Assembly (NCBI GenBank): GCA_013416795.1
Contig: RQSC01001393.1
Coordinates: 1-64,000, forward strand
DNA from: Prasinococcaceae sp. CCMP 1430
Taxonomy: Eukaryota > Plantae > Prasinodermophyta
Direction: 5' to 3'
Length of the DNA stretch: 64,000 nucleotides
Every line of letters starts with the position of its first letter. Positions within the stretch are counted from its first letter, which is position 1. Below are positions 37,498 to 42,315 of the stretch, piece by piece. The notes under the pieces are model-generated. The model searched no databases, was not told the origin of the DNA, and worked only from the letters and a program-made list of their open reading frames with translations. Made by a program: the position numbers and the translations under genes.

Positions 37498-37626
37498 GGC
37501 TTGCGCGCAAGGGGTGGGGTGGGGTGGAGGTGGGGGTGAGGGGCACCTGCCCGCGCGCCGGCAGCCGTATGACGCCCCAACGTCCGCGCACGCGCCACAG
37601 CACGCTTGCTGGGCGCACGCGCCCGG

Positions 37627-38979
37627 ATGGGCCGGGGCGGGTGCGAGCCGGCCTCGAGCGAAGCGGGCTCGCGCCTCGAGGCCGCGCACGCGTGGCTTGC
37701 GGCGCGAGGCGCGCGCGTCGGGGGTGTGGCGCTACGCGTTGGGCAGGGTGCATGTGGGTGCGGTGCTGGCGTGTATGCGACCACCGCCGCTAAGGAAGGC
37801 ACAGTTGTTGCATCGTTTCCGCTGGGGCTGGCACGCGCGGGCGAGGCGCTGGTGCCCGAGGGGCACGAGTGCGACGTGTCGAGCGGCGTCGTGCTGGCGG
37901 CGTGGCTTGCGGCGCACCGCCGCCTTGGATCCGCATCGCCGTTCGCGCCGTGGCTCGCCGCGCTGCCGGCGGAGGGTGGGGCGCTTGCGTGCTGGGAGGC
38001 GCGCGCAGCCGACGCCGCACTGCACGGCACGCCGCTCAGACGCGCCGCACTCATGCAACGAGGCGCGTTGGACGCCGAGCTCACGAGCGCGCGGCCACTC
38101 TTCGAGGCGCTGCTCGACTCTGCGGGCGCTGGCGCGGACACGCCGCGCTGTGAGCTCGCGCACGATGAGTACCTGCATGCCCGCTGCATGGTCTGGTCGC
38201 GCTCCGTCGGGCTCCCTGCCGGTGAGGGAGGCGAGGTCGAGGCCGTTCTGCCCGGCATGGATTTCTGTAACCACGCCGGTGCGGAGGCGAACGCGCGCTG
38301 GGAGATGCTGCTCGGTGGCTCCTCGGAGGAAGCAGAGCTCGGAGGCGGCGAGGCCGTGGAGGACGGCGGTGGCGACAGAGGTGGCGACGACGACCCAGCG
38401 GCGCCGCGGTACGCGCTGATTGCCACACGGCCGATCGCCGAGGGCGACGAGGTCACCATCAGCTACGGCGTCGTAGCAGACAAGACCAACGAGGCGTTGC
38501 TCTTCTCGTATGGCTTCGTTGAGGACGATCCCGCCCGCGACGCGCTCACGCTGACGCTGCCCGTTCGCGGCAGGGAGCACATGGCGGCGCTGGCCCAGTT
38601 CGGCCTGCTGCCGCGCGTCTTGCTGCGGCGACCTCGCTGCGTCTCGACGCGGTCGGACGAGGGCGACGGCCTCGACAAGTTGCTCTCTGAAGCCGAGCTC
38701 GCTGCTGCGTGCATCGTCGCTGCGACGCCGGAGCGAGCACTTGCGCTGGCGGCCGGCGAGAGCACGCTCGAGGCCCGCGACCGCGAAGCTGCGAGGGAGC
38801 TGATTCAGACGACGGTGGGGTGCGCGCTTGACGGCGCCGAGGGCGGAGCAGACGGCGACAACAACGCGGAGACGATGGCTGCACTCCCGCCCGGCGCCAT
38901 CGAGGCGGCGGCGCGCTACCGCGAGGGTGTCGCGGCGGTGGCGCGGGAGGTACTCGAAGCGCTGGAGTTGTCTGGGTAA
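37627..38979 (+). CDS. SET-domain lysine methyltransferase, Rubisco LSMT/SETD3-like
   Basis: SPFAPWLAALP, MVWSRS, LPGMDFCNH, EVTISYG, NEALLFSYGFV. Confidence 0.88.
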   Translation: MGRGGCEPASSEAGSRLEAAHAWLAARGARVGGVALRVGQGACGCGAGVYATTAAKEGTVVASFPLGLARAGEALVPEGHECDVSSGVVLAAWLAAHRRLGSASPFAPWLAALPAEGGALACWEARAADAALHGTPLRRAALMQRGALDAELTSARPLFEALLDSAGAGADTPRCELAHDEYLHARCMVWSRSVGLPAGEGGEVEAVLPGMDFCNHAGAEANARWEMLLGGSSEEAELGGGEAVEDGGGDRGGDDDPAAPRYALIATRPIAEGDEVTISYGVVADKTNEALLFSYGFVEDDPARDALTLTLPVRGREHMAALAQFGLLPRVLLRRPRCVSTRSDEGDGLDKLLSEAELAAACIVAATPERALALAAGESTLEARDREAARELIQTTVGCALDGAEGGADGDNNAETMAALPPGAIEAAARYREGVAAVAREVLEALELSG

Positions 38980-39041
38980 TACATAATATTATGAGGCCAT
39001 ATCACCCCCCGCCACCCCGCTCACTATGACATCGAGCCGTC

Positions 39042-41279
39042 TCAGCTCAGCTTTACCCAGAGCGTCTTCAGGTATATGGGCTGACCGCCTGCTGTGAAGT
39101 CGGGTGGCTGCGCCACGTAGCAGCGCTCGAGCACGTCCCGCCCGCACATGCGCGCCGCCTGGTCGATCATGGCCTCGAAGTCGCGCGGGTCGAGGCGCGC
39201 GCAGTTGGTCGAGCACAGGAGCACGCCGCCGGGCGCCACCACAGACATGGCGTCGTGCGCTAGGCGGGCATAGTTGCGCGCTGCCGAAAATGTGGTCACC
39301 TTGCGCTTCTTGGAGCGGGAGCGGGAAAAGGTTGGAGGGTCAACCGCGACAGCGTCGAAGAGGCGTCCCTGGGCCGGCGATTGGTTTTGAGTGCGGAGCC
39401 ATCGAGGAGCGCGATCGCGTCAGTGCACGCAGCAGGGGTGGCAGCATGCGTGGTTGAGCGAGCGAGGCGCGCTCACTGCACGCACCTTGCGCTGCAGGTA
39501 GCCCAGCCACTCGAAGGCATCGCCGAAGATGAAGTCGTGCTCGTCGGGGTCTACGCCGTTTGCGCGGAAGTTGTCCTTACCCCACTCGAGGTACTTTTTC
39601 GAGAGGTCCACGCTGGTAGTGCGTGGGGCGCGAGGCCCCAGCGCTGCGCACACCGAGAAGGCGCACGTATACGCAAACAGGTTCAAGAACTCCGGCCGGG
39701 CGCCCGGCCGCACGCTGTCGAAGAGCATGCTCGATTCGAAGACACGACCCTGGAGCAGCTTGCGGCGGTTGTCCCGCTGGTCAAGAAATATGCCAACGCT
39801 GTAGCCTTCACCCATGGAGCACAGGAACGTGACCCCGTTTTCGCGCACGGCAAAGCGATCGACCTGCGCGCCGGCGTCCCCACGGCGGTCCTCATCTGCA
39901 TCCTCGCCCTCGCCGCCGCTCGCGCCGTCAACTTCACCGCGGTCGCCGGGAGGCACTGCGAAAGGCCTCGGCGGCGAGCCGGCTACGAGCTCAGGGCTGT
40001 TGCCATCGTTACCAACGTATGCAAGCAGCGACTTTAGATACGCCGACGTGATCGGCGTGCCGCCCTCGCCGAGCGGTCGCTTGCCGAGCCACGAGCCCGC
40101 TCGCCCGGCGTCGCTGGCGGCGTTCTCGCTATCCGACTGCAGAAGCAACGCGCCACCGAGCAGGTCTGCGCTGTGGTTCACCGCGCCACCGTCGCCGCGC
40201 CAAACGCGCACGCAGTCGGTGTCGTCTGGCCACACCGTCGCGCGCGCGGCGGCGAGCGTCGCCGCAGATGGAGGTGCGTCAGCGCCATCTTCGCCCACCT
40301 CCAGCAGCACCGGCTCGCCCGTCTCCGGGTGCAAGAACTCCGTCTTTGACACGCGCGTGTGCGCGTCCCCAACGCGGTATTCACGCGGCCGCTTCTCGCT
40401 GAGGCGCTCCGCTGCAAGCCTCGTTTTTGCCAGCACCATAAGCCCGCTATCCTCCCAGCGCAGCTTCCAGGGCGCTCGCAGCGCGCCCCACTGTTCGGGC
40501 TCGCGCTGGCGCAGCCACTCCAGCACGCCTGCCCCCGCGTTGCGCGCGTCCGCCACCGATGCCGCCCAGCCCGCGGGCTTGTCAACTGCCAGCACGTGCG
40601 CGTCCTCGTGCACGACCATCGGGCAGCCGTAACGCAGGCCGTCGCGGCGCGGCCCGGGTGCAGGCGCGGTGTCTTCAATCGATGCAGGCGCGACATAGCT
40701 GCCAGGCGGTGCGGCGGTGTACTCGAGCAGCTCGTCAGGGCCGCTCGCATCCTCAAACGCGCGCTTCTGCTCGCGCCCGCCACGGCTGTCATCACGCTCC
40801 CAACCACCGCGCCCGCGCCCTCGCGCGAGCGATTCCACCGCAGAGGCCCCGCGTCCCCGGCCGCTGCCTCTCCCGCGGCCGCGGCCGCGGCCGCTGCCAC
40901 CCCGCCCCCTGCCTGGCCGAGAGCGGCCGACCACCACCGGCGGCAGCTGCCGCGGCGCCGCGCGCGCCGCAGCCATGGCTGGCAGCGCCTCCCGCTTGCG
41001 CGCGCGGGGGGATCGCGCGCGTGTGGCGCCCTTGCTGTCTCCACACCCCACACCCCACACCCCACACCGCCACCACCACCACTCACACACACACGCACAC
41101 GCACCCCACCCCACCCCTCGCGACGCGCTCGCTCCCATAACCCTCTCCCGCTGCACGCCTTGCCACGTGGAAGTTACGGGTACAACAGAGGTGGCTCGAT
41201 TATGGGTGAAGGTAAATAGGGTTCGCAGTCTTCCTCTTGCGCGGGGCGCGGCGAGGAGCAGCAGCGCGGCCTTACCCAT
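39042..41279 (-). CDS. Fusion of a degenerate RluA-like pseudouridine synthase domain and an RlmI/RlmK-like SAM-dependent rRNA methyltransferase
   Basis: VVHEDAHVLAVDKPAG...WKLRWEDSGLMVLAKT...FLHPETGEP, then VRENG...GIFLDQRDNR, LNLFAYTCAFSV, SVDLSKKYLEW, DPPTFS. Intron 39485-39369. The start is uncertain (41279 or 40976). Confidence 0.85.
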
Positions 41280-41446
41280 ATGCGCGTGCGTTCGAGGAGG
41301 GGGAGGGGGGAGGGGGCTAGCGTGGGCAGAGCTCGCGGGCGTTGCGCCCCCACCCCACCCCCCCTAACACCCGCCGCCCTCCCTCTCCCTCTGCGCTCGT
41401 GTCGCGGATCTCGCCTTGTTCCGTGTCGCCTGGCGTGCGCGGCGGA

Positions 41447-42315
41447 ATGGCGGGCAGTGCGGCCTTGCGCGGCGGCGGCGCCGCCGCGCGCTGCGGCGCC
41501 GCGCGCATGCGGCGCGCGGCGCCGCGGCGGGCGCGGGCGGTGGGGACTCCGCGGCGGACGCGGGGAAGGCTGCCGCCGAGGCGGTGGAAAGTGCTATCGG
41601 CGTGGAGAAGGTGGACGCGCCTGCGCCCAGCGCGACCTACCGCGACGTTGAGGAGCTCGACCTCGCCTACTGCGGGAAGTACGCGGCAGCCACGGCTTTC
41701 CAGGTCGGCGCGCTGTGCCTGGCGCTGGGTGCGATCGACGCGGTCACCCCGGCGCTCGCTTCCGCGACGCCGCTGGGTGGCGCGCTGCCCAAGGGTATGC
41801 TGTGGGTGTTCCTCGCATTCATCTCCGTGAAGAGCAGGGTGTTCAGCCCTCTCGACGCGCGCCGCACGCGGAGGACATTTGACACGGTGAAGAGACCGAG
41901 CTGGGCACCGCCGGGGATCGCGTTCCCGATCATTTGGTCCACAATCGCTTTGCTGCGCGCCACCTCTGGCACGATGGTGTGGGAGGCACTCGGACGGACC
42001 GCGCTGGCGGCGCCGCTCGTGGCTTTTGTGGTGCACCTCGCTATCGGCGACCTCTGGAACGCCATGTTCACGACGGAGCGGCGGCTCGGCGCGGGCGTGG
42101 TGGGCGTGCTCATGGTGTGGCTCAGCGTCATGACGGTCGGCAGCATCTACTACGGCGTTGCACCGGCTGCGGCGTACGTCTTCGCGCCGAGCATGGCGTG
42201 GATTAGCGTGGCGACTTGTCTCGTGACGAACATCTGGTACATCAACGGGAAGGAGCCGCTGTACCCGATGAAGAGAGTGGACATCGACACTGCCGAGGCA
42301 GGCGTGAAGGCGTGA
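41447..42315 (+). CDS. TSPO: TspO/MBR family protein with a plastid-type presequence; frame discontinuity near 41540
   Basis: KRPSWAPPGIAFPIIWSTI, LAIGDLWNAMF, APSMAWISVATCLVTNIW. The ATG-led transit peptide is in a different frame from the mature part. Confidence 0.85.

Follow-up and report, generated by a model that had tools for sequence, protein, structure and literature searches.

A stretch of 64,000 nucleotides from Prasinococcaceae sp. CCMP 1430 (contig RQSC01001393.1, positions 1 to 64,000; the whole of it is called the window below) was found to carry a gene in which the remnant of an RluA-type pseudouridine synthase is followed by an intact RNA methyltransferase of the COG1092 group. 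The gene lies on the minus strand at 39042-40976, has two exons and encodes a protein of 605 amino acids, the window protein. What we infer, with a probability of roughly 0.6, is its activity, substrate and compartment and the role of the remnant: the product would be an organelle-targeted ribosomal RNA (rRNA) methyltransferase that uses the dead synthase stub as a structural or RNA-docking head. The gene descends from a bacterial fusion that joined two enzymes, a pseudouridine synthase of the RluA type and an RNA methyltransferase of COG1092. Its methyltransferase half would most likely still methylate one base of the bacterial-type large subunit (LSU) rRNA of the plastid or mitochondrion, with the basic N-terminal extension giving the protein access to that compartment. 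The first ~80 residues of the remnant would most likely have been kept as the head, in the place held by the PUA domain in Smu776 and RlmI, with the rest of the remnant decaying. The parts of the gene and of its product are the following.

39486-40976, minus strand: coding exon 1, taken from the open reading frame (ORF), with the ATG at 40976 and 497 codons, the last being AAG ahead of the GT donor
39369-39485, minus strand: spliceosomal intron of 117 nt, GT..AG, phase 0, within the methyltransferase domain, placed by RNA joints
39042-39368, minus strand: coding exon 2, 108 codons plus TGA at 39042-39044, with DPPTFS (motif IV), GGVLLCSTNC, QPPDF and YLKTLW
40626-40976, minus strand: N-terminal extension, residues 1-117, by composition a candidate organelle presequence
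40380-40625, minus strand: conserved N-part of the RluA-type domain, residues 118-199, recognised by TIGR00005, RluC, AlphaFold2 (AF2) and Foldseek
40449-40469, minus strand: WKLRWED replacing the motif II sequence HRLDKET, with Arg in the catalytic Asp column
40242-40379, minus strand: drifting C-part of the remnant, residues 200-245, REYRV (a motif III relic) and then FLHPETGEPV, flanking both deletions
39861-40241, minus strand: EEHEE-like middle domain and beta-hairpin, residues 246-372, from alignment, AF2 strands and Foldseek
39486-39860, minus strand: first part of the class I methyltransferase, residues 373-497, with GYSVGIFLDQRDNRR, LNLFAYTCAFS, VDLSKKYLEWG and FIFGDAFEWL

A joint skipping exactly 117 nt was present in RNA contigs of three runs (X1, X2 and X3), and the intron was retained in a DNA-like run (X10) from the same organism. 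Transcription and splicing of the gene therefore follow the model, with the single spliceosomal intron that had been predicted in a sequence-only reading of the window. One spliced RNA contig of 1770 nt spans 38973-40859 with the intron as its sole gap, so the degenerate N-domain belongs to the mature mRNA. The gene is nuclear and expressed; its host is a green picoalga, marine and rich in GC. The alignment of exon 2 with the bacterial fusions reaches the C-terminus. The motifs quoted in the sequence-only reading were all found on the minus strand (VVHEDAHVLAVDKPAGW, WKLRWED, SGLMVLAKT, FLHPETGEPV, LNLFAYT, DLSKKYLEWG and DPPTFS); its start at 40631 marks the beginning of the domain, and the coding sequence itself had to be extended to the ATG at 40976. 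Searches, fold models and alignments were run on the two exons separately, and the full 605-residue protein was used only in scripts. The intron was also considered as an introner-type repeat, which was rejected as no second copy was found within the window. In a single low-depth record, a metatranscriptome contig (X3), 40969 is linked to 41469 through three additional letters, which reflects either chimeric assembly or rare splicing upstream.

The synthase half can no longer make pseudouridine: another residue stands in place of the nucleophilic Asp, and ~90-100 residues of the core, motif III among them, have been lost by deletion. The catalytic column was read from an alignment of 119 bacterial fusions among the 120 listed hits of a word search. 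Asp was present in 119/119 of them, against Arg in the window protein and Pro in its ortholog from a second marine alga; the bacterial ILHRLDKETSG corresponds to APWKLRWEDSG in the window protein. The missing core residues were lost in two deletions, ~75 after motif IIa and ~20 after motif III, and GRTHQIRVH of motif III is cut down to REYRV. Both the death of the synthase and the shortening of its central part, already noticed from the letters of the window, were thus borne out. The conserved N-part comprises strands 1-2, helix 1, the former motif II strand, SGLMVLAKT and helix 2. It was matched by TIGR00005 (RluA subfamily) over residues 121-194 at 1e-8, with 33-35 bits against a cut-off of 192.7, and by RluC over residues 120-196 at 5e-4 in a comparison with solved structures; the Pfam scan of the window protein gave no match to PF00849 at E <= 1. 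The AF2 model of residues 100-262 had a predicted local distance difference test score (pLDDT) of 79 overall and of 80-96 in the core. All 15 Foldseek hits in the PDB at E <= 1e-3 were pseudouridine synthases (best E 7e-6, TMq 0.42-0.56), either crystal structures, with RluC, RluA and RluD best, or chains in ribosome-assembly particles. The N-domain was thus modelled by AF2 and Foldseek as a partial RluA fold, in line with its first description as RluA-like, and the model shows that the stub is compatible with such a fold rather than proving it independently.

The best match of the window protein, P0001, lies on marine-metagenome contigs with eukaryotic neighbours, e.g. IFT81. Its upstream exons on L001 and the spliced 493-residue member P0275 showed the same architecture, with APWKLPAEEGGLMALAKT. 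Motif II of this ortholog reads WKLPAEE; the APWKL replacement is common to both algae, and the lesion therefore predates their split. An N-terminus of the ortholog beginning MCARLPW... was rejected, this stretch being intron according to P0275 and L001. The ortholog gene has three introns (L001 902-3238), after MAAR…EVQS, after VVDK and after AKAQEE. No intron is present in it at the site used in the window gene, nor in the window gene at the three sites of the ortholog. Since the positions differ, the introns were gained after the arrival of the gene, and since the two algae split, introns have come or gone in each lineage separately.

The comparison of the two algal proteins suggests that constraint on the first ~80 residues of the remnant equals that on the catalytic methyltransferase, while the rest is drifting. 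Identity was 68% (54/80) in residues 118-199 and 23% in residues 200-245, as compared with 56% in the EEHEE domain and 67% in the methyltransferase. The remnant could instead be a functionless relic in the course of being lost, with the protein working as a plain EEHEE plus methyltransferase enzyme and the stub conserved only through the close kinship of the two algae. The low identity of the C-part and the loss of the fold core would fit this, as would the bacterial variants that shorten the N-half to varying degrees and the stand-alone ~300-residue methyltransferases without an N-domain in Akkermansia, Roseibacillus and Planctomycetota. However, the N-part has kept pace with the catalytic domain and exceeds the EEHEE domain in identity, while the adjoining C-part and the presequence drifted. 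The reading frame is open over 130 residues in both algae, a compact and confident fold is predicted by AF2, and even the shortest bacterial variants keep approximately the first 60 residues. A mere relic is, on balance, unlikely.

The C-terminal half is a COG1092/PF10672 methyltransferase that has remained intact and has Smu776 and RlmK as its closest counterparts. Members of COG1092 have the layout PUA-EEHEE-hairpin-methyltransferase and fall into five branches, one of which is shared by Smu776 and YcbY-C (RlmK, m7G2069), with RlmI apart (PMC3367195). PF10672 (Methyltrans_SAM) was the only Pfam family detected, at 3.6e-12 and 46.6 bits against a gathering score of 27 for exon 1, and exon 2 carries the profile on to position 281/286. 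The top-ranking NCBIfam model was the RlmK part of RlmKL (NF008748, 3.8e-23), followed by m5C enzymes at 1e-8 to 1e-11, including RlmI at 1.6e-8. The scores stayed far below the equivalog cut-offs, with 81.6 vs 466 bits for RlmKL (NF008748) and 33.8 vs 712 bits for RlmI (NF011707), and strictly speaking the window protein is not RlmK and not RlmI. By sequence, the solved structure that matched best was Smu776 at 3.4e-14, and then RlmKL, 3vse, PH1915 and RlmI. The earlier label of an RlmI/RlmK-type enzyme is thereby narrowed: the Smu776/RlmK branch is nearer and RlmI more distant.

All columns invariant in alignment A2 are kept in the window protein, namely FLDQRDNRR, LN-F-YTC-FSV, S-DLS-KYL-WG and H-FI-GD-F-W and, in exon 2, DPPTFS, STN, QPPDF and YLKT-W; these include the S-adenosylmethionine-binding and catalytic motifs N-x-F-x-Y-T..FS, D-L-S and DPP-x-F. 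The sequence-only reading had called this domain intact, and the invariant motifs agree with it. The AF2 model of residues 100-497 (pLDDT 77.6, predicted template modelling score 0.71) aligned in Foldseek over 250-337 columns with 3vse, 2b78/3ldf, 2as0, 3c0k, 3v97 and 4dmg, the alignments to 3vse, Smu776, PH1915 and RlmI having 300 columns or more, and in this model an EEHEE domain and a hairpin precede the Rossmann methyltransferase domain. The middle domain aligns with the TDAFR..HG..DG..G motif of the bacterial fusions and carries an acidic low-complexity insert at approximately residues 330-370. Motif VI (GGVLLCSTNC, 39183-39203) reads CSTNC in the window protein and the ortholog, CSTNA in a clade of intact eukaryotic fusions treated below, and ASTNA in bacteria. 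The second Cys of CSTNC, and no other, lies opposite the FSCSG Cys of RlmI, an m5C enzyme; this could reflect a change of chemistry or be meaningless.

The conservation of these columns also bears on whether the protein is an enzyme at all. The whole of it might be a non-catalytic ribosome-assembly or RNA-chaperone factor with both halves serving as scaffolds, as do inactive homologues of modification enzymes in kinetoplastid mitoribosome assembly intermediates. The fold matches of the stub include the Trypanosoma/Leishmania mitoribosomal LSU assembly chains 6yxx_EC, 7aoi_XP and 7am2_BZ and a chain of an E. coli pre-50S particle, 7bl5_7, and there are published cases of modification enzymes that ribosome biogenesis does not need as catalysts (PMC10325924). 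Yet every family-invariant methyltransferase column is kept (motif I, DLS, DPPTFS, QPPDF), which would not be expected once catalysis had become dispensable, and we consider a pure scaffold very improbable.

The N-terminal extension is basic, has no acidic residue in its first 47 positions and is missing from the bacterial homologues. Both algal proteins begin with a homologous MAA(A)RAAP, namely MAAARAAP in the window protein and MAARAAPP in exon 1 of the ortholog. Because the N-termini of all eukaryotic members are basic and free of acidic residues and the family acts on bacterial-type rRNA, the protein is probably targeted to an organelle. The extension also carries RG/RGG repeats, with RGRG and RGG runs within residues 17-58. 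The run (RGRGRGGSGRGRGRGRGSGRGRG ... RGRGRGG) at 40800-40930 of the window is where both RNA and DNA contigs break, interrupting the assembly. Such a region could be of the glycine- and arginine-rich (GAR) nucleolar, RNA-binding type, in which case the protein would act on cytosolic or nucleolar RNA, and weak sequence matches of the extension to the RGG proteins SERBP1, uS5 and SmD1 point the same way. But the repeats are not kept in the ortholog, whose extension is short and Ala/Arg-rich, nor in the intact eukaryotic clade, whose N-termini resemble algal transit peptides, and the enzyme family acts on bacterial-type rRNA. A nucleolar or cytosolic function therefore seems most doubtful, and the organelle-targeted methyltransferase is preferred.

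Bacterial fusions of an RluA domain with a methyltransferase, which the sequence-only reading had placed in Verrucomicrobia-type bacteria, do exist in large numbers. More than 2000 proteins were returned by the word search, nearly all of ~530-550 residues with PF00849 + PF10672; the named matches belong to Verrucomicrobiota, Gammaproteobacteria and metagenome-assembled genomes of Binatia. Of the best 80 relatives among GTDB species representatives, the great majority belonged to Verrucomicrobiota (Limisphaerales, Pedosphaera, subdivision 3) and a few to Gammaproteobacteria. A word search limited to residues 105-370 gave nothing at E <= 0.01 in a space of 5.8 billion sequences and is uninformative either way. 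The Rfam scan of related loci gave nothing at gathering score. One fusion of the Verrucomicrobia type lies on a contig, L008 (CAYIOH010000772.1, 2027 bp), that is binned as Bifidobacteriaceae; the gene groups with Verrucomicrobiia in the tree, and the binning is probably an error.

The synthase half has died several times within bacteria as well. Both the Asp and the motif III Arg are absent from full-length proteins of Verrucomicrobiota (P0125) and Riflebacteria (P0162) and from the full-length P0167. Shortened proteins of 390-440 residues which keep only approximately the first 60 residues of the domain are P0147, P0152, P0158, P0169, P0171, P0172 (Verrucomicrobiota), P0176 and P0177. In the trees these dead or shortened forms occupy three or more separate positions. 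The methyltransferase half was matched in every examined hit, though no search for the reverse case was made. A bolder proposal, which we advance as speculation and think rather unlikely, is that the first 60-80 residues of the RluA fold form a self-sufficient RNA-recognition head for COG1092 methyltransferases and that, after independent losses of the synthase in algae and several bacterial lineages, this head still steers the enzyme to an ancestral, doubly modified rRNA site. If so, the algal protein would be a natural minimal version showing the synthase part that is needed for site recognition alone, and the bacterial fusion would define a new coupled pair of pseudouridine and methyl modifications.

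An exhaustive HMMER search of 1.84 billion representatives gave 35 proteins below 1e-30; only the cluster of the ortholog stood out with a higher score than the rest, and P0121, which came next, is itself eukaryote-like. This result argues against a fusion that is universal in green plants. The contigs of P0121 and P0133 also carry zf-MYND, TMEM120, F-box-LRR and hAT-transposase genes. These two proteins are extended at the N-terminus by 40-68 residues rich in R, A, S and P, and keep H-x-RLD and GRTHQIR. Together with P0294-P0308 they form a starred clade (95/94), which shares CSTN in motif VI with the window protein, bacteria having ASTN. The careful tree places the window protein inside the fusion clade, separated from the stand-alone methyltransferases by a 100/100* split. 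The window pair adjoins the intact eukaryotic clade, from which all of its nearest rows by path are drawn. A tree holding the four eukaryotic rows together was 28.5 log-likelihood units better than the free quick tree, with a p value of 0.78 in the approximately unbiased (AU) test, so that one eukaryotic origin was not rejected. The reading of the origin relies on the careful tree and the AU test, with the quick trees set aside.

Since the synthase half is intact on eukaryote-like contigs and the joint tree is not rejected, the transfer would be older than the window lineage and the death of the synthase later. The simplest history is then that an intact fusion entered a eukaryotic, probably algal, lineage once, long ago, and that the synthase was lost later in the lineage of the window. 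The bacterial horizontal transfer suggested in the sequence-only reading agrees with the nesting of the algal gene in a bacterial family; that the synthase died directly upon transfer does not agree with the existence of the intact eukaryotic clade. The donor can be named only as the Verrucomicrobiota-dominated fusion clade.

Several observations weigh against the explanation preferred here and the history that goes with it. The evidence for the activity of the methyltransferase, its target and its location is indirect. What speaks for the RNA-binding or specificity role of the stub and for the organellar substrate, both put forward in the sequence-only reading, is the conservation pattern and the presequence-like N-termini only, and the N-terminus of the window protein, rich in RG/RGG, might be a GAR region of nucleolar type instead. 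The claim of constraint is drawn from just two species, a thin basis. The AF2 model of the stub was built on an alignment dominated by intact bacterial domains, so its likeness to RluA is partly inherited. The eukaryotic nature of the intact clade rests on its neighbouring genes (zf-MYND, TMEM120, F-box-LRR, hAT). The backbone of the tree is weak: the window pair stands in an unresolved three-way split with two bacterial sequences having a dead N-domain (92/83, not starred). The quick trees moved the pair, which was sister to P0018 in one and, in the other, adjoined both the stand-alone clade and the bacteria with a dead N-domain.

Two further observations concern eukaryote-like sequences. A eukaryote-like contig with an intact RluA-methyltransferase gene, L091, carries at 1224-2504 one ORF in which nitrile hydratase beta and alpha domains are fused; an intron in its D-Tyr deacylase gene was rejected as proof of eukaryotic origin, as the stretch reads through. 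In the ESM Atlas, a diatom cluster of 57 proteins of ~869 residues has PF10672 and no PF00849, with feature scores of 0.81 to the window protein and 0.93 to P0300. No member of it was among the best 150 of the exhaustive HMMER search. The cluster may be another eukaryotic lineage with a degenerate N-half and is offered as a lead only.

The nearest known systems compare with the window protein as follows. The bacterial RluA-COG1092 fusions, mostly from Verrucomicrobiota (Limisphaerales, Pedosphaera) and also from Gammaproteobacteria, Myxococcota and Bdellovibrionota, have the same domain order and align end to end, with ~40-45% identity overall and 57% in the methyltransferase. They keep HRLD and GRTHQIR, whereas the window protein has lost both, its synthase half being ~90-100 residues shorter, and has added the 117-residue extension, the acidic insert, a 4-aa insert (SKKRK) after DPPTFS and the intron. 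Smu776 and RlmK (YcbY-C, 23S rRNA m7G2069; COG1092 branch 4) share the EEHEE domain, the hairpin and the methyltransferase layout with it, and Smu776 also has STN in motif VI. They differ in having a PUA domain (Smu776) or the THUMP-RlmL half (RlmKL) where the window protein has the synthase remnant. RlmI (YccW, 23S rRNA m5C1962; COG1092 branch 1) belongs to the same Pfam family and has the same EEHEE-plus-methyltransferase fold, but has a PUA domain and FSCSG in motif VI, against CSTNC in the window protein, and is less similar in sequence. RlmKL (YcbY) likewise has its COG1092 methyltransferase behind a second RNA-modifying module that brings RNA binding (PMC3367195); both of its halves are active methyltransferases, whereas the partner in the window protein is a dead pseudouridine synthase. 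In the trypanosomatid mitoribosomal LSU assembly chains (6yxx, 7aoi, 7am2) a pseudouridine-synthase fold is perhaps likewise kept non-catalytically on organellar rRNA. Those chains, whose activity status was not checked, are separate full-size proteins, unlike the stub, which is half a domain fused to an apparently active enzyme.

This is not a new kind of system; fusions with an inactivated enzyme domain are well known, as are algal genes of bacterial origin. New here are the eukaryote-like metagenome contigs with an intact fusion and transit-peptide-like N-termini. The gene points to a large bacterial family of pseudouridine-synthase-methyltransferase fusions for which no published work was found: a full-text literature search gave no paper on RluA-COG1092 fusions and no description of eukaryotic members or of a series of dead domains, and the databases annotate the fusions just as 'pseudouridine synthase' or 'class I SAM-dependent methyltransferase'. 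Members of this family are present in eukaryotic algae, probably through a single old transfer. The family offers a natural series, from the intact fusion through a full-length dead domain, a stub of 130 residues and a stub of 60 residues to no N-domain, which could separate the RNA-recognising part of a pseudouridine synthase from the part that does the chemistry. The window protein is also a candidate enzyme for a still unassigned methylation of plastid or mitochondrial LSU rRNA in Mamiellophyceae-type algae.

Upstream, a divergent ORF on the plus strand at 41416-42315 resembles TspO/MBR, with 40977-41415 between the two genes. The upstream region common to both genes contains a GT/CA-type simple repeat at ~41039-41129, which was skipped in the read comparison. 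On the other side, a plus-strand ORF of 457 residues at 37606-38979 looks, from the ORF list alone, like a SET-domain lysine methyltransferase of the Rubisco-LSMT type (…DEVTISYG…LLFSYGF…).

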